Below are positions 8,310-45,715 of a DNA stretch of 64,000 bases, piece by piece. Positions within the stretch are counted from its first letter, which is position 1. Each line of letters begins with the position of its first letter. Under the pieces are notes generated by a model. That model saw nothing but the letters and a program-made list of their open reading frames with translations. It did not search any database and was not told the DNA's origin. The stretch is taken from sequence record NC_047815.1; one strand, 5' to 3'. Both the position numbers and the translations under genes were made by a program.

Positions 8310-8334
8310 GGGCTGCCTTCGGGTGGCCCTTTTT
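8310..8334 (+). terminator. Intrinsic terminator
   Basis: GGGCTGCC-TTCG-GGTGGCCC-TTTTT. Confidence 0.85.
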
Positions 8335-8508
8335 GTTTTTCTACACCCACAACTCTTGTGCTTTAAAGACCTTAGACGTGCTTAGTCTTGGAAACAGTCC
8401 GGGCACCGAAAACTACAAATCTGTGGTCAAAATAATCGCAGAAATCACTAGACAAATCTTTCTCAACCTGATAGACGCGGCAGTCGAAAATCTTTTTTGA
8501 AAAAGTGC

Positions 8509-8536
8509 TTGCAACATGTGTTCAGCATGATATTAT
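8509..8536 (+). promoter_or_regulatory. Sigma70-type promoter
   Basis: TTGCAA-16nt-TATTAT with extended -10 TG, intergenic. Confidence 0.65.
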
Positions 8537-8624
8537 GCAATCTCAGTAAGACGCAGCGCAGACAACGCAGCGACTTACAAACGCTCTTTAACAATATGAC
8601 TAATCAACTAAGAGAGAAAATCTT

Positions 8625-9429: not shown

Positions 9430-9518
9430 CTTAACTCAAATCAGAAAAAGCTCAGATCTCGCTTAACTCAAATCGCTGTAAATTTGACTTAGTGCATGGT
9501 CGTGACTTAACTCAAATC
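9430..9518 (+). repeat. Three exact 13-nt direct repeats CTTAACTCAAATC
   Basis: Copies at 9430, 9462, 9506; inverted variant AATTTGACTTAG at 9481. Confidence 0.9.
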
Positions 9519-9521
9519 AGA

Positions 9522-9573
9522 CAAATCTGCGGTCAAAACAGTGATTGCAATGCGGTCATAATTATCGCATTAT
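9522..9573 (+). promoter_or_regulatory. GGTCAAAA-class promoter
   Basis: CAAA..GGTCAAAA 9531; TTGCAA 9545; CATTAT 9568. Confidence 0.75.
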
Positions 9574-18043: not shown

Positions 18044-18095
18044 CAAATAGCTGGTCAAAATGCACAGAGCAACGTGGTTGCTTTTGTGTTATAAT
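18044..18095 (+). promoter_or_regulatory. GGTCAAAA-class promoter
   Basis: GGTCAAAA 18053; TG-T-TATAAT 18090. Confidence 0.85.
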
Positions 18096-38360: not shown

Positions 38361-39368
38361 ATCTCAATGTCTCATGTACCAGAACTAGGCTCAAGCCATG
38401 AAGTAGGTATTCTTATAGGTGATGACGAACAGCATGAACGCGTTATCTATGTTCCAATCCTTGTTGATGAAAGACAAGTACGCATCCCTGTTAATGGTGG
38501 CACTCTCGGTCTTCACGCAATCAAACGCCCTATGCTGGTAATCAATACACTGACTCACAAGTATCGGCTTGTGGTTGCCAACATTCGGCAGCATGTAAAG
38601 AGCAACATTCATACGTTCACGCCAGATAAAAGTATTCTCGACCATATGCTTGCTGTGCCTGGTACGTTTCTTGATTTATCCGACTCAGTGCCTGATGACT
38701 ATCAGCCTACGTCTGATCGTTATGGTGTGTTTGCTTATTCAACGCCTGTCGATCGTGGTGCGCATATAAAGCCTCGTCAGATCTATATCAGTGATCGTAA
38801 GTTTCATCATCCGTTTCTTGACGCGATTTCTGATGAGGACATGCAGCAGGTTCTCGACTACATCAAGCAGACCAAGACGTGGGAAGACCTGTGTCTTGAT
38901 CATGCTCGTGGTCGCTGCAAGATTGATGCGCCAGGCATTGATACCTACTTGCGTTATGAGACAGATATCCCTAAATATGTTCCTGAGATATTTGCGGCAG
39001 CATGGAAATCTCTGAACATCATTAACGCCATGCCACCAGCAGAGATTGCAGATCGGCGCACAGAGATGGTAACAGCTATTGAAGTTGCTATGTCGTTTGA
39101 TCGTCTTTGGGCTTGCGGTCCTAAAGTAACGTATGCCGGGGAGATTCCTGAAATGCGTTTTGAGTGGCAACGTGAAGAACGTGAAGGTCAGGTGGCAGCT
39201 ACTCGCTACATGTGTTACTGCGTTGTGCCAAACGATCTGCCTATACCAGGTCGCTTTCTCGTTATCGACACGCAGGCAGAAGGGTTTGAGAATCGCTTCC
39301 GTCCGTTTATGTCTATTAGTGATGCTCTGACTTTCGTATCAACCGAATACCACAAAGAAGAGGTTTAA
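38355..39368 (+). CDS. Hypothetical protein (337 aa)
   Basis: Start within the repeated cassette. Confidence 0.85.
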   Translation: MKISMSHVPELGSSHEVGILIGDDEQHERVIYVPILVDERQVRIPVNGGTLGLHAIKRPMLVINTLTHKYRLVVANIRQHVKSNIHTFTPDKSILDHMLAVPGTFLDLSDSVPDDYQPTSDRYGVFAYSTPVDRGAHIKPRQIYISDRKFHHPFLDAISDEDMQQVLDYIKQTKTWEDLCLDHARGRCKIDAPGIDTYLRYETDIPKYVPEIFAAAWKSLNIINAMPPAEIADRRTEMVTAIEVAMSFDRLWACGPKVTYAGEIPEMRFEWQREEREGQVAATRYMCYCVVPNDLPIPGRFLVIDTQAEGFENRFRPFMSISDALTFVSTEYHKEEV

Positions 39369-39369
39369 T

Positions 39370-39741
39370 ATGATGATGCAAGACGGAACCAAAATCGCAG
39401 CCAAAGATATGTTAGCTGCCAGCACTATCCCTGCCGAACAGCGCATAGCTCATACGGTACCTAACGTTGTTATCGTGGCGGTTGTGTATGAGTCTGACAG
39501 TTTCAGTGGTCAGCGTCATGATGGTTTCTGCTACATGCCGAACAACGAATCCTATCAGGCATTCAAAGCGCATTTGCAAAAGCACAAGAGCCGTGAAAGC
39601 TACTGTTTCATGACAGACGTTAATCTACTGTCTATAGAAGATGCAGGACTTGAGGCGATGATCGCTGCGGTGGCTGAGCGCCCAGATCGACCGTGGCTGT
39701 GGGTAGATACTGATTATGCTGTATGTGCGTGGTACGACTAA
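39370..39741 (+). CDS. Hypothetical protein
   Basis: GAGGT SD. Confidence 0.8.
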   Translation: MMMQDGTKIAAKDMLAASTIPAEQRIAHTVPNVVIVAVVYESDSFSGQRHDGFCYMPNNESYQAFKAHLQKHKSRESYCFMTDVNLLSIEDAGLEAMIAAVAERPDRPWLWVDTDYAVCAWYD

Positions 39742-39745
39742 TCAG

Positions 39746-39797
39746 CAAAATCGTGGTCAAAATAGCTGTTGCGTTTAGGCGCTTGTTTTGATAAACT
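39746..39797 (+). promoter_or_regulatory. GGTCAAAA-class promoter
   Basis: GGTCAAAA 39755; TTG at -35; TG-A-TAAACT 39792. Confidence 0.8.
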
Positions 39798-39847
39798 GTG
39801 AGTGGGCAACAAGCTCACTCATATACAACGTCTGAGGAGACGAGACA

Positions 39848-40279
39848 GTGACTACTAAGATGACAGGATTACAGATTCACAACGCACGTAAAAACGATCC
39901 ATACGACTGGACTCGTTTGACTTCTCAAGTTCAAGGAATGCTGATTCAAGCCGAAGCTGAGAAGATACAAATGGTGGCCATGCCCCTCACCGCTTTTCCT
40001 AAGTTTAAAGAGCACGCCAATCTAAACTATGTGCTTGATGAATTGAACGACTGGCGTTTATCCGAACTGTCTACTCTATCTCAAATCAGTCATGATTGGT
40101 TTGCTAGTGATGGAACACACTTTGATTATGTGTTGTTTATTCGTTGTCCTGAGGCTCGTCAGACAATGCGTACTTTTGATGCGGAAACAAACAAGCTGGT
40201 TGACGCCCGTATGTTAAGTAGCTCGACCATCATCATGCCAAAAGATTTTGAGTTGTTTGATACCGAAATAGCAGAATAA
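39848..40279 (+). CDS. Hypothetical protein
   Basis: GAGGAG SD. Confidence 0.75.
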   Translation: MTTKMTGLQIHNARKNDPYDWTRLTSQVQGMLIQAEAEKIQMVAMPLTAFPKFKEHANLNYVLDELNDWRLSELSTLSQISHDWFASDGTHFDYVLFIRCPEARQTMRTFDAETNKLVDARMLSSSTIIMPKDFELFDTEIAE

Positions 40280-40287
40280 AAATATCT

Positions 40288-40311
40288 AGCGCCTGCACAA
40301 GCAGGCGCTTT
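40288..40311 (+). terminator. Hairpin/terminator
   Basis: AGCGCCTGC-ACAA-GCAGGCGCT-TT. Confidence 0.6.
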
Positions 40312-40338
40312 GCTTATACACTGTCTGAGGAGACGGAA

Positions 40339-40830
40339 ATGAATACAACGCATAAATTCGACGATGAATCAAACACAGCCATTAGCCTTGCTGTTGAGGC
40401 CGCACAAAAGCTGATCGGTGATCTCAACATGCAGTCAATTGACGTTGCTATCACTGGTGCTCGCGTGTATCTCACTGTTGCTGATATGCTTGGCGGTCAT
40501 TTGCAGCAAGCCAGTTTTATCTTTAACGGCCAGCTCGTAACTGTGGTCATCAACGTTAAGCAAGCTGATGACGCTGAGGAATTTGTCTCAAACGAAATTG
40601 ATCGCAATTTTCAGATGGAACTCGGCGACCTACTGATCGGCACTATGGACGAAGCTGTTGATGAAGGAGTTATCAGCGGTTACGAACAAGGTGCGATGTT
40701 TATCGCTGCCCTGTCCTTGATGTATATCGGACTCAAGAACAGCGGCATTACGGAACTCAGATTCCGACACAGCAAGAAAAACTACGTTTCACACATTACC
40801 CTTATGCCAGAGGAAACTGAATCAAAATGA
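40339..40830 (+). CDS. Hypothetical protein
   Basis: GAGGAG SD. Confidence 0.8.
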   Translation: MNTTHKFDDESNTAISLAVEAAQKLIGDLNMQSIDVAITGARVYLTVADMLGGHLQQASFIFNGQLVTVVINVKQADDAEEFVSNEIDRNFQMELGDLLIGTMDEAVDEGVISGYEQGAMFIAALSLMYIGLKNSGITELRFRHSKKNYVSHITLMPEETESK

Positions 40831-41015
40831 AAACCGTGAACGAGTTGGTAAAGCAATTAAAGCAGTCCAATTCTATCGTATTAACCGAATCAGTGGCAGA
40901 CAGTGTTCTGCCCGATTTAAAATTCACCCTTGATGTGTTGTGTATGAATTACCGTCTGCGTCAAATCGATACACTCAGCGGAGGGCGCCAGACGAAAATT
41001 GAATTACGCAGTTAA
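40827..41015 (+). CDS. Small hypothetical protein
   Basis: Overlapping start. Confidence 0.65.
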   Translation: MKTVNELVKQLKQSNSIVLTESVADSVLPDLKFTLDVLCMNYRLRQIDTLSGGRQTKIELRS

Positions 41016-41029
41016 CTGAACTACCCTTT

Positions 41030-41113
41030 GGCCTTACGTTATTTATCCATCCCTCCTGACAGAGGTTGCGTAAGGTCCTTTTTAAAGCGTGTTTTCGAGC
41101 GTGCTTTAAAAAG
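41030..41113 (+). ncRNA. Two-stem RNA module 1
   Basis: Stem 41030-38/41069-77 directly followed by CTTTTTAAAG hairpin 41078-41113. Confidence 0.5.
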
Positions 41114-41157
41114 CTGATAACTAGAAAACTCACCTTCTAGTTGGTACGTGAAAGCTG

Positions 41158-41209
41158 CAAATCTGCGGTCAAAACAGTGCTAGCAACAAGCGAAACGCTG
41201 TGCTACAAT
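41158..41209 (+). promoter_or_regulatory. GGTCAAAA-class promoter
   Basis: GGTCAAAA 41167; TG-C-TACAAT 41204. Confidence 0.85.
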
Positions 41210-41215
41210 ATATGT

Positions 41216-41540
41216 GCAGCATGTCGTGTGCTGTAACATCGAGGAAACTTGCTAGTCTTTGAGTCTCTATCTATATGTGCGGCCATGCACTGATATGAGA
41301 CTCCTTTTTAAAACAGGTTCAATGAGCCTAGTTTAAAAAGCAATTAAAGCCAAGAGACTTCAACCCACTACTTGGTTAGTAACACCTCTGGTGCCAGGTC
41401 GGCGGCTGCATCCCAGAGACTGGGGCCTGGCTCCCTTTTTAAAGCTGATTTTGATTAGTCAGTTTTCGAAAGGGTTCGATACCCTTGAGCGCATTTGGAT
41501 TTACGCGGTTTTCACCAACTGTGCTCTCATATTAAACCGC
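41216..41540 (+). ncRNA. ~330-nt structured leader with modules 2 (41261-41340) and 3 (41390-41472)
   Basis: Consecutive hairpins, no credible ORF between promoter and ATG 41554. Confidence 0.55.
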
Positions 41541-41553
41541 AAAGGAAATAACA

Positions 41554-42267
41554 ATGCCTACATTACGCAAACCTCGTCCAGCAGATAAGTTCTCTCAAGC
41601 TCGCGCCGCCAAGAACTCTCCTGAACGTCAAGAAGCAGCCAAGAAGAAAGTGCCACGCGGTCCTAAATCAGCAGGCCCTCGTCGCAATACTGTCCAAGTG
41701 GAACGCGCTGCTACGATACGCGACGAGGACCGTGTTGTAAACCTCGTGCTGTTTATCTTACGTGGTTGGAAACAAGCTAAGGCGGATAGTGAAGCCAGCG
41801 CTGCACAGGGCATCATTAAGGTAAGTCGTCGTGAAATCGAACTAGCTTTACGCGATCTCAAAAACACGCGTTTCACTAAAATCCCGACACTGATTAACGA
41901 TGTGTTGGTCTACAACGAAATCGTAAATGAGTTTGGTCAGTGGGTGTACGTAGAGCATGATAGTCCTGACTGGATGTTCATCTTAACGCCAGATCGTGAA
42001 ACGCTTGTGACACGCTGTCGCATTCGCCGCAATAAAGAGACAGACGACCTGACACAGCTCATATCCTCAGAAGTTCTGTTGAAAGATTGGAGCGAAGAAG
42101 AGGTAGAGATAGACGTCTCAGAAGAAGGCGAGGAGTATCAATCATGGACCCTCAGCCAACTTCAAAACTTTGCTAAAGCCGAAGGTTACATGGGCATCAA
42201 AGATGAAGGATGGAACGATCGTTCAGCACTCATTGCTCGAATCATCAACAAGGGCGCAATCAAATGA
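41554..42267 (+). CDS. Hypothetical protein: basic N-terminus, C-terminal HeH/Rho-N-like module
   Basis: WTLSQLQNFAKAEGY...RSALIARII; AAGGA SD. Confidence 0.8.
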   Translation: MPTLRKPRPADKFSQARAAKNSPERQEAAKKKVPRGPKSAGPRRNTVQVERAATIRDEDRVVNLVLFILRGWKQAKADSEASAAQGIIKVSRREIELALRDLKNTRFTKIPTLINDVLVYNEIVNEFGQWVYVEHDSPDWMFILTPDRETLVTRCRIRRNKETDDLTQLISSEVLLKDWSEEEVEIDVSEEGEEYQSWTLSQLQNFAKAEGYMGIKDEGWNDRSALIARIINKGAIK

Positions 42268-42593
42268 GTCTGACTATTCGTTCTGCCGCTGAGGCCGCCT
42301 CGATGATCGTAGAAAACGTTACTCTTTACTCTAATGAGAAAGAGTTCGAAACAATACTACCTCGCTTTAAAATGCCAGAGACGGCGATACGTCGAATTTC
42401 AGGACACGCTCGCATAATACCTGAAAGTTATATCGAACAATTGTCTGTAGAAATACAGCAACTCGATTGGATGCTGCTGCGATGTAGTGCAAAAGAATTT
42501 ATCTTTATGCATTGTGATGTACCGTCAAACTGGACGACATTGAGTGCCAAGCGTGTGGCGCCAAATCATAGAGACGACTCAGTAGACGATTAA
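42264..42593 (+). CDS. Hypothetical protein
   Basis: Overlapping ATGA. Confidence 0.7.
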   Translation: MSLTIRSAAEAASMIVENVTLYSNEKEFETILPRFKMPETAIRRISGHARIIPESYIEQLSVEIQQLDWMLLRCSAKEFIFMHCDVPSNWTTLSAKRVAPNHRDDSVDD

Positions 42594-42621
42594 CTCTAAT
42601 TGAGCAAGGACGCATAATCTA

Positions 42622-42673
42622 CAAATAGATGGTCAAAATAGCGGTAGATTTCTACCGCTATTTTTGATACACT
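42622..42673 (+). promoter_or_regulatory. GGTCAAAA-class promoter with perfect 14-bp inverted repeat
   Basis: GGTCAAAA 42631; AAAATAGCGGTAGA-TT-TCTACCGCTATTTT 42635-42664; TG-A-TACACT 42668. Confidence 0.85.
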
Positions 42674-42679
42674 AGAGAT

Positions 42680-42806
42680 CAAGCAGTACATCTTTTTAAA
42701 GTGTTCTAAGTGGGATTAGAGTGCTTTACAAAGAGCAAGACTTTTGACTGTGTGGCGGACTTCTAATGTCCGATGAATACGCGTTCAACGCCACACAGTC
42801 CTTTTT
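42680..42806 (+). ncRNA. Candidate small RNA (~125 nt)
   Basis: Own promoter, no ORF, hairpin 42692-42733, 12-bp stem 42746-57/42789-800 with two inner hairpins, then CTTTTT. Confidence 0.6.
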
Positions 42807-42833
42807 GCAGAGAGCACCATCTAGTGTACTGTG

Positions 42834-42885
42834 CAAAACAGTGGTCAAAATGACCGTTGCTTTTAACCATGATTTTTCGTACTAT
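42834..42885 (+). promoter_or_regulatory. GGTCAAAA-class promoter
   Basis: GGTCAAAA 42843; TTGCTT 42857; TACTAT 42880. Confidence 0.8.
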
Positions 42886-42947
42886 TATATCTCTTGAGCA
42901 ATAACGCTCAACGCTATATCATCTACTAATACTGAGGAGTATTAATT

Positions 42948-44567
42948 ATGGCACGTCTCGAAACTTCTTCAAACCTGGTTGGCAAATCTATCGTTCTGCT
43001 GAACGGCACCAAAGCTAAAATTGTTGACGCTATCACAAGCGGCTACAAAACTGATAAGAGCGCGAAGCGTATCGCCACTCGCTGCGTTATCAAGAAGGGC
43101 ACTGGTTACGCAGAAATTGAACGTATGCCGCTGACCCAGCTTGTTGACACGGGTGAGGGTTATGTTGAAATCAAATCTGCTGACTCGAAAGCGCCTGCTA
43201 AAAAGACCGCTGCTAAGTCTACAGCAAAAGCATCAACCAAGACCACAACGAAAACTTCCGCCAAAAGCTCAACCAAAGCCGCAGCGAAAGCTGATAGCAA
43301 ACCAGCAGCAAAAGCAAAAGCGCCTGCTAAAACAAAAGCAGCCGCTAAGAAAGAAGAAGCCGAAGCGCCGCGTAGTCGTGTTCGTCGTAAGTCTGCACAG
43401 CCGACTACTTTGACCGCTATTGATCAAGAGTTCACCGAAGCTCTGGTGATGCGTGTTGTTGAGCATTTGAAATCAGGCAATCTGCTGTCACTTGCTACTG
43501 ACGGTGTTACGCCGATTGATAACGCGTTTGAAGTTACTTATGATGCGCAGTATGCAGCGCCGAATCAATTGCAGTTTACTATCGGTGTTGAGTATGCGAT
43601 GCCGCAGCAAGCCGCTGCAAACGATGCAGTAGAAATCAGCGCAGAAGTGCTGGAGCGTGCTGCTAAGAAAGTCGGCAAGACCATCGGCAAGAAACTTGCT
43701 GCTGCTATCAAGTCTGCGTACGGCGTAGACAGTGCGAAAGACCTGCTTGCTGGTACCGTACTGCGTCACGGCGATGATGAATTCATCTATATCGGTGCAA
43801 GTGCTGCCGACGCTGATAAAGCGTATATGTACAACGCCGAGTCTGATAAGTTTCGTGCAGTAGCCGCTGCTAATCTGTCTAGCTATGAGCTGGTGGCTGA
43901 CGAAGAACAAGACGAAGACGAAGAAGAGGAAGAAGAAGACGACAACGCTGACCTCGACTTTGAAGACGACGAAGAAGAAGAGGCTGATGACGAAGAAGCC
44001 GAAGAAGAGGAAGAGGACGAGGAAGAAGAAGCCGAAGAAGAAGAAGACGGCGAAGAATCTGAACCTGAATATTCTTATCGTTCAATCTCGAAAGATGAAT
44101 TGAGCCTCGTCAATAAGAAAGTAACTGCTAAGTATGTGGCGCAACTTGCTGAACAGTGGTCGCTTGATGTTGAAGCTCTGGTGCCTGGTCTGATTGTGTC
44201 AGACGGCGAAACCGAGTTCGCATATGTCGGCTTCGACTCTAAAGGCGGTCTGGTAGTTATCGATACACAAGACGGCGAAGCGATGGTCTACGCTAAAGCA
44301 CAGGTTAAATCGCTGACTGAGTTTGCCGCTGTGTTGGGCGACGACGAGACCTCTGACGAAGAAGCAGAAGAGGAAGAAGTTGAAGACGAAGAAGACGAAG
44401 AAGAAGACGGCGACGATGATTTTGACTTCGATGATGCCGACTCTGCTGACCTCGATGATATGTCAGAAGATGAATTGCGTGATAAAGTGATTCAAGCAGG
44501 TCTGACTACCGTACGCAAAGCTGGTCGCATGAACGAAGATGAATTACGCGAACTGCTGGCTGACTAA
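42948..44567 (+). CDS. Modular protein: K/A-rich segment, two D/E tracts, C-terminal 39-aa HeH-like module
   Basis: GAGGAG SD; composition read from translation. Confidence 0.9.
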   Translation: MARLETSSNLVGKSIVLLNGTKAKIVDAITSGYKTDKSAKRIATRCVIKKGTGYAEIERMPLTQLVDTGEGYVEIKSADSKAPAKKTAAKSTAKASTKTTTKTSAKSSTKAAAKADSKPAAKAKAPAKTKAAAKKEEAEAPRSRVRRKSAQPTTLTAIDQEFTEALVMRVVEHLKSGNLLSLATDGVTPIDNAFEVTYDAQYAAPNQLQFTIGVEYAMPQQAAANDAVEISAEVLERAAKKVGKTIGKKLAAAIKSAYGVDSAKDLLAGTVLRHGDDEFIYIGASAADADKAYMYNAESDKFRAVAAANLSSYELVADEEQDEDEEEEEEDDNADLDFEDDEEEEADDEEAEEEEEDEEEEAEEEEDGEESEPEYSYRSISKDELSLVNKKVTAKYVAQLAEQWSLDVEALVPGLIVSDGETEFAYVGFDSKGGLVVIDTQDGEAMVYAKAQVKSLTEFAAVLGDDETSDEEAEEEEVEDEEDEEEDGDDDFDFDDADSADLDDMSEDELRDKVIQAGLTTVRKAGRMNEDELRELLAD

Positions 44568-44578
44568 CTGATACACAT

Positions 44579-44597
44579 GCGCCCTTCGGGGCGCTTT
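44579..44597 (+). terminator. Intrinsic terminator
   Basis: GCGCCC-TTCG-GGGCGC-TTT. Confidence 0.7.
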
Positions 44598-44635
44598 ACT
44601 TATTCATTCAAACAATCAAACGAGAGATTACGATT

Positions 44636-45715
44636 ATGGCCAAAGCTATATCCTCTGCAAACACCAACTTGTTAAACGCCCGTGTTGTTCGTGCTGACGG
44701 CACAAAGACATTCATCAACAAAGTCAATGCTCGTGGTTACAGCACTGATGCGAAAGGACCTCAGATTCCTATGCTGCGTCTTGTACAAAGCGGTCGCACG
44801 CTGAAAGAGATTCCAGAAGCGTATGACAAAGCTGCGTGCATCATTAGTGATGGCATCGTGTTCAAACTGAACCGCAAGCAACAACGCCAGCTTGCTGATA
44901 ACGAGATCGACAATAAAGAGTTTCGCGTAGACCTCGATCGCTTGCAGTTTGTTACTGACGCGCCCACTAAAGTGCAGCGCATGGCTGTACGACACACTCC
45001 TAAAGCAGAGTCTGTTAAAGCAGACAAGCGCCCGACTGCTAAACGCGTGCGCAAGCAAGCGAAAGCCGAAGGCATTGAAGTAGATATGTTGACCAAGAAA
45101 ACACAGACGGCGTCTCGCAAGAACAAGAAAGAAAAAGATGTGCCTGCTGATTTCATCAAGCAGATGCCACGCGAGATCAAACGATTGATTCAAGACGGTG
45201 AGTTCAAACTCAATCGCAAACAAATCGAAGCTGTGTTGAGTGCGTTAGGCGTTGACAGCGCATTCTATGCAGTCGCTGTTGAGCGTTATTTAGACGGTAT
45301 GTCACTGCGTTTACCCCAGCAAGACAAGTCGAAAGCAGGTAAGCGAAGCAAAGCTATCACACCTGTATATGCTGACCAGCGTGAATACAAAAAGCTGTTT
45401 CGAAAACTGAAAACAAAAGTTGTTGTGCCGACCAAGAAGTTTGAAGCACAGCACAAACTAAAAGTGCGCGAAGTAAGAAAGTTCTGGCAGGAAGCTCTTG
45501 GTCTGTCTAGCCCTGCTGATATTAAGAAAGGACTCATGGTCATTGATGACTATGGAGATAAGTTGATGCTGGTCACTATCGATCAAGTATCAACTATCTT
45601 TGTGAAAGCAGACGGTAGTGGTGAACGTCTGATGGCTCACGCCTTGCTTAATCACAAAAGCGGGCTTGGTAAATTCACATTGGCTCCTGCCGATGAACTG
45701 GATGCTAGCGCATGA
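44636..45715 (+). CDS. Basic protein, partial paralog of 42948 ORF
   Basis: NL....V...GTK..I......GY.TD shared N-terminus. Confidence 0.85.
   Translation: MAKAISSANTNLLNARVVRADGTKTFINKVNARGYSTDAKGPQIPMLRLVQSGRTLKEIPEAYDKAACIISDGIVFKLNRKQQRQLADNEIDNKEFRVDLDRLQFVTDAPTKVQRMAVRHTPKAESVKADKRPTAKRVRKQAKAEGIEVDMLTKKTQTASRKNKKEKDVPADFIKQMPREIKRLIQDGEFKLNRKQIEAVLSALGVDSAFYAVAVERYLDGMSLRLPQQDKSKAGKRSKAITPVYADQREYKKLFRKLKTKVVVPTKKFEAQHKLKVREVRKFWQEALGLSSPADIKKGLMVIDDYGDKLMLVTIDQVSTIFVKADGSGERLMAHALLNHKSGLGKFTLAPADELDASA

Follow-up and report, generated by a model that had tools for sequence, protein, structure and literature searches.

What do two unusually long gene-free gaps in the genome of a jumbo phage encode, and how might they act on the genes beside them? 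Erwinia phage vB_EamM_Yoloswag (NC_047815.1, 259,700 bp) is a jumbo myovirus whose record annotates a phage sigma factor and no phage RNA polymerase, and gene timing in jumbo phages that rely on the host RNA polymerase is poorly understood. The window analyzed here is the final 64 kb of this genome (64,000 nucleotides (nt); a window coordinate equals the record coordinate minus 195,700). In it, the gaps at 41016-41553, between gp310 and gp312, and at 42594-42947, between gp313 and gp314, carry four two-stem RNA modules in a neighborhood where the plus strand holds every gene. With a probability of roughly 0.55, we read the modules as plus-strand intrinsic-terminator gates, placed close behind a promoter or at the end of an operon, with a second hairpin that would form in the read-through RNA; functional statements on the modules, from promoters and termination to the purpose of the second hairpin, are all drawn from sequence.

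Architecture of the modules

Each module comprises a GC-rich stem with a long loop (stem 1), a C followed by five T's (U5 in the RNA), and a second hairpin that uses this same T-run as its 5′ arm. All lie on the plus strand. Module 1 starts 15 nt past the gp310 stop codon; its stem 1 (41030-41077) has 9-10 base pairs (bp) and a 30-nt loop with a small CCTC/GAGG hairpin inside, and its second hairpin (41078-41113) has 16 bp, with U5 at 41079-41083 inside the 5′ arm. In module 2, an outer stem of 7 bp closes a structured 29-nt loop (41261-41303) and is followed by the second hairpin at 41304-41340 (U5 at 41305-41309). The stem 1 of module 3 (41390-41434) is the weakest terminator-like stem of the four, with one mismatch in its outer stem and an inner hairpin at 41412-41424; its second hairpin, which runs from 41433 or 41435 to 41472 or 41474 (U5 at 41436-41440), is orthologous to the gp312-leader hairpin of all relatives. 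Module 4 has a perfect 12-bp stem (42746-42800; 42746-42757 pairs with 42789-42800) around a 31-nt loop, and a second hairpin that runs from 42801 or 42803 to 42838 (U5 at 42802-42806); the GGTCAAAA element of the next predicted promoter begins 5 nt downstream of it. A fifth hairpin (42692-42733) is a homolog of the second hairpins without a stem 1. Its position is occupied by a complete module in the relatives SN5, L110, L155 and L156, and it matches the second hairpin of the first tandem copy there, which indicates that its stem 1 was replaced in Yoloswag.

The distance from stem to T5 is 0-1 nt, reaching up to 4 nt for module 3 in the minimum-energy fold. Stem-1 loops measure 26-31 nt in Yoloswag and 12-60 nt in its relatives, and inner hairpins are frequent. 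The Yoloswag copies have nothing in common in sequence beyond the junction string and its complement (12-19 nt), while their bodies differ. An earlier note on this DNA had listed the four modules and the fifth hairpin, all of which were recovered at the positions it gave, and had described each first stem plus U5 as terminator-like, its U-run re-paired by the next hairpin, a description that the covariation of both stems in relatives bears out. Its statement that internal sequences vary while the architecture stays constant holds among the Yoloswag copies but not between phages, where loops are often conserved and it is the stems that covary. Moreover, a weak candidate that it had placed at 8347-8394 proved to be an ordinary terminator (8311-8330) with a T-run, followed by an unrelated small hairpin, and the covariance model described below has no match there.

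Conservation and covariation among relatives

Searches by tblastn with gp312 and gp314 retrieved about 25 distinct relatives, including Alexandravirus, Rivsvirus SNUABM5, Sasquatchvirus Y3, Dickeya phage AD1 and Yersinia phage fHe-Yen9-02, and protein and DNA searches extended this set with contigs of metagenomes and of sequencing-run assemblies. A DNA pattern scan of metagenomes was too loose to be used; L110 and L143 were the only true relatives among the loci that it listed. The two-stem design is present in all relatives, at identical gene boundaries. In particular, one module copy lies immediately behind a gp310 homolog of 62-64 amino acids (aa), and the gp312-leader module keeps a fixed distance, from -153 to -81 relative to the gp312 start, in all relatives, down to the most distant ones (40% protein identity; one from a Salmonella assembly). 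Between gp313 and gp314, the relatives closest to Yoloswag have two tandem module copies.

The earlier note had called for a covariation analysis across related phages, and both stems carry compensatory changes. For the gp312-leader module, compared across 15 relatives, 100% of the alignment cells of stem 1 are paired, with changes on both sides in six of nine pairs; the second hairpin has 96.6% of its cells paired and 3-5 pairs with double changes, compared to 34-60% of cells paired in shifted-register controls. The leader from the U-run to the ATG pairs in 93.8% of cells across 16 sequences, with double changes in 11 pairs. Further, RNAalifold, supplied with no structure, returned the same two-stem layout for the modules behind the gp310 homolog, with nine compensatory pairs. 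The orthologs of modules 1 and 4 (L155, L156, SN5 and L110) have stem arms that differ yet stay complementary; the module 1 ortholog of L155 has compensatory changes in its stem, and the loop core of module 4 is kept in three of four relatives and partly in the fourth, while its stem covaries. The compared sequences are kin, and these counts are accordingly not counts of independent events, though their direction is uniform.

Strand and specificity

The folded molecule is plus-strand RNA, as indicated by two asymmetries: paired cells include 47 G·U versus 4 A·C combinations, and folding as plus-strand RNA stabilizes the second hairpin by a mean of 6.6 kcal/mol over the minus strand, the plus strand being favored in 20 of 21 modules. 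Because the second hairpin sits past the U-run, an RNA that continues beyond the U-run must exist and matter. Compared to shuffled sequences, the fold of the first gap has z-scores of -6.2 on the plus strand and -3.1 on the minus strand; that of the second gap is strong on both strands (z = -6.4 and -7.3).

The modules are also specific to this locus. The exact ten-base junction string CTTTTTAAAG occurs four times in the window, compared to 0.22 occurrences expected. A covariance model, trained on 15 relatives without any Yoloswag sequence and scanned over both strands of the whole 260-kb genome, yielded five matches only, which are the four modules and the fifth hairpin: 41029-41115 (49.8 bits), 41260-41342 (32.5 bits), 41421-41474 (30.3 bits), 42745-42843 (27.7 bits) and 42687-42735 (20.6 bits). 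A census of the genome counted 423 T5 runs, 35 of them behind a GC stem, and among all of these runs only those of modules 1 and 2 have a second hairpin with at least nine contiguous pairs. An Rfam search of 39000-45000 with E up to 10 returned noise and no family, in agreement with the earlier note, which had recognized none.

Predicted promoters and transcription units

A promoter-like motif recurs around the modules and elsewhere in the window. It consists of a GGTCAAAA element, a -35-like hexamer and a TAnnnT -10 hexamer located exactly 40 nt past the element, with copies at 18053, 24522, 29238, 39755, 41167, 42631, 42843 and 55283, and a less regular one at 9531. All copies are on the plus strand, within the plus-strand gene block and mostly ahead of genes, and relatives have the same motif at corresponding places; the predicted 5′ ends of transcripts from this motif class often bear a small hairpin. 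The motif may represent a class of phage promoters that depends on an activator.

Three of these predicted promoters surround the modules. The first (41167-41209, plus strand; -10 TACAAT at 41204-41209) has a predicted start near 41216, where a small hairpin (41216-41234, from folding) at the predicted 5′ end of the transcript is akin to those behind other promoters of the class. The second (42631-42673, plus strand; -10 TACACT at 42668-42673) has a predicted start near 42680, and a perfect 14-bp palindrome (42635-42664), which resembles a two-way terminator behind gp313 as well, forms its spacer. The third (42843-42885, plus strand; -10 TACTAT at 42880-42885) is the predicted promoter of gp314 and of the long row of plus-strand genes. 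On this map, the predicted promoter at 39755 would drive gp308-310 in a unit ending at module 1; transcription from 41167 would reach module 2 (about 94 nt), module 3 (about 225 nt), and then the conserved leader and gp312-313; and transcription from 42631 would cross the fifth hairpin and reach module 4 (about 127 nt). Between module 3 and the gp312 ATG there are no further promoter-like sites, so that gp312 would be expressed only via read-through.

Modules as probable terminator gates

The form of stem 1 plus U5 and its placement, at an operon end or 40-130 nt past a predicted promoter of the recurrent class, together with a layout like that of lambda PR′-tR′, the nearest working analog, lead us to read the modules as terminator gates. 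All four have a GC-rich stem and then a U-run on the transcribed strand, T5 runs being present at the genome's other stem-plus-T-run sites as well, and each either closes a transcription unit or lies, like an attenuator, in a leader. At each one, stem 1 and U5 would stop a share of the host RNA polymerases, either at an operon end (module 1 behind gp310; module 4 before the gp314 promoter) or shortly past a promoter (modules 2 and 3 before gp312; module 4 behind 42631). With the predicted promoters at 41167 and 42631, the order of promoter, terminator and short RNA ahead of an operon is that of a lambda Q-type gate, and the terminated RNAs would run from near 41216 to 41309 (about 94 nt) and from near 42680 to 42806 (about 127 nt). 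Transcription that continues through the gates would enter gp312-gp313 or cross the next promoter. The earlier note had offered three functions for the modules, of which an attenuator series fits best: modules 2 and 3 lie between the predicted promoter at 41167-41209 and gp312, with no further promoter intervening, and module 4 lies between the one at 42631-42673 and the gp314 promoter.

The second hairpin would form in read-through RNA only, where the U-run pairs with a downstream A-run and the helix stacks on stem 1, leaving no single-stranded AU-rich stretch in the leader. It might thereby shield the read-through RNA from ribonuclease (RNase) E or Hfq, or offer a double-stranded processing site. 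While a polymerase is at the U-run, the 3′ arm of the second hairpin is still unmade and cannot act on that polymerase; the hairpin is therefore probably not an antiterminator.

Several observations weigh against the gates. Transcript starts and 3′ ends at the modules are predictions from sequence alone. The loops of intrinsic terminators are short and compact (about 3-8 nt); the stem-1 loops, at 12-60 nt and partly structured, lie far above that range. A simple terminator scan detects only the inner part of module 3. The U5 gives way to A's, which makes a short tail. The conserved loops and covarying stems are more than a mere terminator needs. Moreover, Y3, SN30 and SN25, which lack gp312, retain the promoter, the short RNA and the module, with a new promoter directly behind, and such units could be stand-alone RNA genes just as well as gates. 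No antiterminator pairing upstream of stem 1 and common to relatives was seen in the leaders, which were read by eye only, and no antiterminator protein emerged among gp308-gp315 (Pfam) or from the fold of gp312, the other proteins of the genome not having been searched; elsewhere in the genome, gp116 is annotated as a "putative transcription elongation factor" and gp237 as a sigma factor. Finally, the need for the U-run to pair after read-through has no explanation in the data.

Alternative explanations

The conserved loops and the promoter-bearing units without gp312 suggest that the short RNAs, or their loops, do something further, whether by pairing or as a site for a protein. A possible explanation, which we hold tentatively, is that the modules yield stand-alone small regulatory or decoy RNAs: the terminated or excised short RNA would be the product, the stem-1 loops its working surfaces, and the second hairpin a fail-safe that gives the same 3′ end by processing if termination fails. 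Such RNAs overlap with terminator gates and do not exclude them. The loop cores of the module 4 type (Yoloswag, SN5, L110 and L156) and the C-rich loops behind the gp310 homolog are conserved while the stems covary, and the units with their own predicted promoter survive without gp312 in the three phages named above; there are also precedents, as terminator loops of enterobacterial small RNAs can carry regulatory function (PMC11979758) and in Stx phages the short PR′-tR′ RNA functions as a small RNA (PMC7547250). However, the loops and bodies reach complementarities of at most 11-14 nt with the rest of the Yoloswag genome, close to chance expectation (the search did not extend to host targets); selection maintains the second hairpin, which the terminated RNA would lack; and the modules behind the gp310 homolog lack a promoter of their own. 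The earlier note had proposed units that release small RNAs, which is compatible with the combination of promoter, short RNA and module kept without gp312, but no convincing target was found in the Yoloswag genome. An unlikelier explanation starts from the second hairpin itself, which in read-through RNA could be a site of double-strand cleavage, for example by host RNase III, like lambda tI/sib or the sites of the T7 early region, separating upstream from downstream RNA and setting their stabilities. This, too, would be compatible with gates. The hairpin exists in read-through RNA alone and includes the terminator sequence, which is the logic of lambda sib, and it is a long, nearly perfect AU-rich duplex (16-19 bp) on plus-strand RNA, stacked on stem 1; its helix nevertheless falls below the roughly two turns typical of RNase III substrates, and no internal-loop signature as at T7 sites is evident. 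More speculatively still, each module might act as a two-state RNA switch of a new kind, giving a small regulatory or decoy RNA when terminated and, when passed, a fully double-stranded element read by a phage or host factor. That factor could be a processing enzyme, or an antitermination factor that recognizes the conserved stem-1 loops, and the balance between the two states would time the expression of gp312-313 and gp314-334, with translational control added by the gp312 leader.

The earlier note had also suggested antiterminators like HK022 put for the long downstream operon; the stacked stems would then bind the polymerase in cis and make it resistant to terminators across gp314-gp334. 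The geometry of all modules agrees with this, as the hairpins lie 0-1 nt apart and total 70-95 nt, and modules 2 and 3, the latter's ortholog included in all relatives, are just downstream of a predicted promoter. Nevertheless, the conserved U5 directly behind a GC stem in every module favors release over resistance; module 1 and its counterparts behind the gp310 homolog lie at gene ends, after the stop codon and without a promoter of their own; no Rfam match exists in 39000-45000; and pairing with the U-run accounts for the sequence of the second hairpin, for the most part a plain AU helix. We consider this improbable. Explanations at the level of DNA, whereby the inverted CTTTTTAAAG / CTTTAAAAAG arms form cruciforms or bind a dimeric DNA-binding protein, with the RNA folds as a by-product, are more improbable again. 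The AT-rich, near-palindromic arms are clustered in 1.8 kb and absent elsewhere in the window and, by the model search, in the genome, and gp312 has faint, non-significant hints of a winged-helix-like fold; however, the hairpin interior between the arms also pairs and covaries, and the excess of G·U over A·C and the 6.6 kcal/mol weaker minus-strand fold form an asymmetry unexpected for a DNA site. Other candidates were rejected. Repeats like those of type III antitoxins (ToxI), which are tandem direct units of about 34-36 nt beside an endoribonuclease toxin gene, do not match, as only junction strings of 12-19 nt are repeated while the bodies differ, and Pfam and PHROGs showed no nuclease or toxin family among the neighbors that could be a ToxI-type partner. 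A tRNA or tRNA-like gene was dismissed because ARAGORN finds no tRNA or transfer-messenger RNA in the window and only hairpin 3 of the gp312 leader is T-arm-like. A leader-peptide attenuator was considered for a 14-codon open reading frame with a TTG start across stem 1 of module 2 (found by eye), for which no counterpart was found in relatives.

The gp312 leader

Behind module 3, all relatives share a further set of elements: hairpin 3, hairpin 4 and an invariant AAACCGC. Hairpin 3 (41470-41486, plus strand) has a 5-bp stem and a 7-nt loop, TTCGATA, resembling the T-arm of a tRNA, and carries three independent compensatory changes (seen in both GG/CC pairs tested, with a third in SN25). Its 5′ strand shares bases with the 3′ end of the module 3 second hairpin, so that the two compete for four pairs. 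Hairpin 4 (41487-41526, plus strand) has a 13-bp stem, in which four pairs are changed on both sides, and an invariant loop containing GCGGTTT at 41505-41511. The AAACCGC heptamer (41534-41540, plus strand) is complementary to that loop and stands just ahead of the Shine-Dalgarno sequence AAGGA (41542-41546). This arrangement suggests a candidate pseudoknot or translational operator; all seven pairs are invariant, which makes covariation uninformative. On the opposite strand, the gp312-leader modules are nearly symmetric (for example, window 41433-41484 and L011 3879-3930): the minus strand presents a T-arm-like hairpin, then T5 and the second hairpin's complement, and scores about 28-30 bits with the covariance model in relatives and 10 bits in Yoloswag, with no minus-strand gene nearby.

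The record annotates gp311 (41391-41588, GTG start) across this region. A coding reading was rejected, as the frame overlaps both module 3 and the leader and extends into gp312 while the stems change in a compensatory manner; in relatives, the region has loop indels of 1-3 nt and no ORF that corresponds to gp311, open frames lie in differing frames (judged by eye), and SN5 annotates no gene. Thus, gp311 is probably not a gene, which would correct the annotation.

The gene behind modules 2 and 3, gp312 (41554-42267, plus strand), encodes 237 aa of unknown function: there is no function from Pfam or PHROGs and no sequence match in the PDB. In its AlphaFold model (predicted local distance difference test score, pLDDT, of 77), a folded core follows a disordered, basic N-terminus; the fold comparison gave nothing below E = 0.4, the winged-helix-like matches being faint and not significant. 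The possibility that gp312 is a recognizable antiterminator or RNA-binding protein was therefore dropped, none of the Pfam, PHROGs, PDB and fold searches having given a function or a significant match. The last ~60 residues of Yoloswag gp312 are absent from its closest relatives, whose gene has 208 aa. In addition, 34 nt in the 3′ part of gp312 (42130-42163) are 74% identical to 42934-42967, which spans the ribosome site and start of gp314; together with the unshared tail, this likeness suggests past recombination there.

Neighboring features

The surrounding proteins offer few clues to function, as gp308-gp315 include no Pfam family and their PHROGs matches are all of "unknown function". The next gene, gp313 (42264-42593, plus strand; record 237964-238293), encodes 109 aa of unknown function, and the mechanical open reading frame in its frame begins farther upstream, at 42210. 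The gp314 Shine-Dalgarno sequence, GAGGAG, lies in the loop of a small conserved hairpin (ATACT...AGTAT, 42932-42946); in relatives, the gene after the module behind the gp310 homolog has a matching arrangement, ACAG GAGG CTGT (L002 5896-5914, and others).

Two observations concern promoters elsewhere in the window. Just upstream of the promoter-like site at 9531, three exact copies of the 13-mer CTTAACTCAAATC lie at 9430-9442, 9462-9474 and 9506-9518 (0.09 expected), which may be binding sites of a regulator. Further, a 330-nt gap contains a near-canonical sigma-70 promoter at 8509-8537 (TTGCAA, a 16-nt spacer and TATTAT) that differs from the GGTCAAAA class and may belong to another temporal class. 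Among the relatives, a close member of the clade that carries the module, L162 (GCA_007314735.1), is a 266-kb contig in an assembly labelled Salmonella enterica serovar Infantis; the hosts of the clade may extend past Erwinia, Dickeya and Yersinia, or the Salmonella sample may have carried a phage.

Comparison with known systems

Several members of this clade (Yoloswag, Alexandra, Y3, AD1 and their kin) have been used or proposed against fire blight and soft rot, and we know of no transcript map for Yoloswag, Alexandra, Y3 or AD1. The covariation-backed RNA elements and the promoter class mark probable start, stop or gate points of their transcription units. Terminators, attenuators and small RNAs are known kinds of element; a conserved second hairpin that pairs with the U-run is undescribed to our knowledge, and no description of such a design was found in Rfam or in papers on these phages. 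If read-through RNAs are indeed marked in this way, it would be a compact means for one terminator to yield two RNA fates, and the U-run-pairing hairpin would be a new motif to seek in other phages.

Among known systems, lambda PR′-tR′ (the 6S or StxS RNA) resembles the modules in having a terminator within about 100-200 nt of the promoter, a short RNA by default and a long operon beyond. It differs in that the modules stand in series, with long stem loops and a conserved hairpin pairing with the U-run that tR′ does not have, and in that no Q-like protein or qut site was identified here, the protein search having covered gp308-gp315. Like enterobacterial Hfq-type small RNAs, whose terminator loops can carry function (PMC11979758), the predicted short transcripts would end in a stem and a U-tail. 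Unlike them, the modules have a short U-tail of five and much larger loops, and some copies have no promoter of their own.

HK022 put resembles the modules in its pair of neighboring stem-loops, in their total size and in a position just behind promoters; put is not known to have a U-run between its stems, in contrast to the modules, several of which moreover lie at operon ends. In tandem-hairpin, "V-shaped" intrinsic terminators, a class known from computational surveys in bacteria, both hairpins are terminator candidates. These terminators likewise place two hairpins without a spacer at gene ends, whereas the second hairpin of a module has no U-run behind it and takes that of the first as its 5′ arm. 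In retroregulation at lambda tI/sib, read-through past the terminator completes a duplex with the terminator sequence and alters the fate of the RNA. Both there and in the modules, read-through adds sequence that forms a new duplex, such that the structures and fates of terminated and read-through RNA would differ; sib, however, lengthens the terminator stem itself, whereas the modules form a separate hairpin with the U-run.

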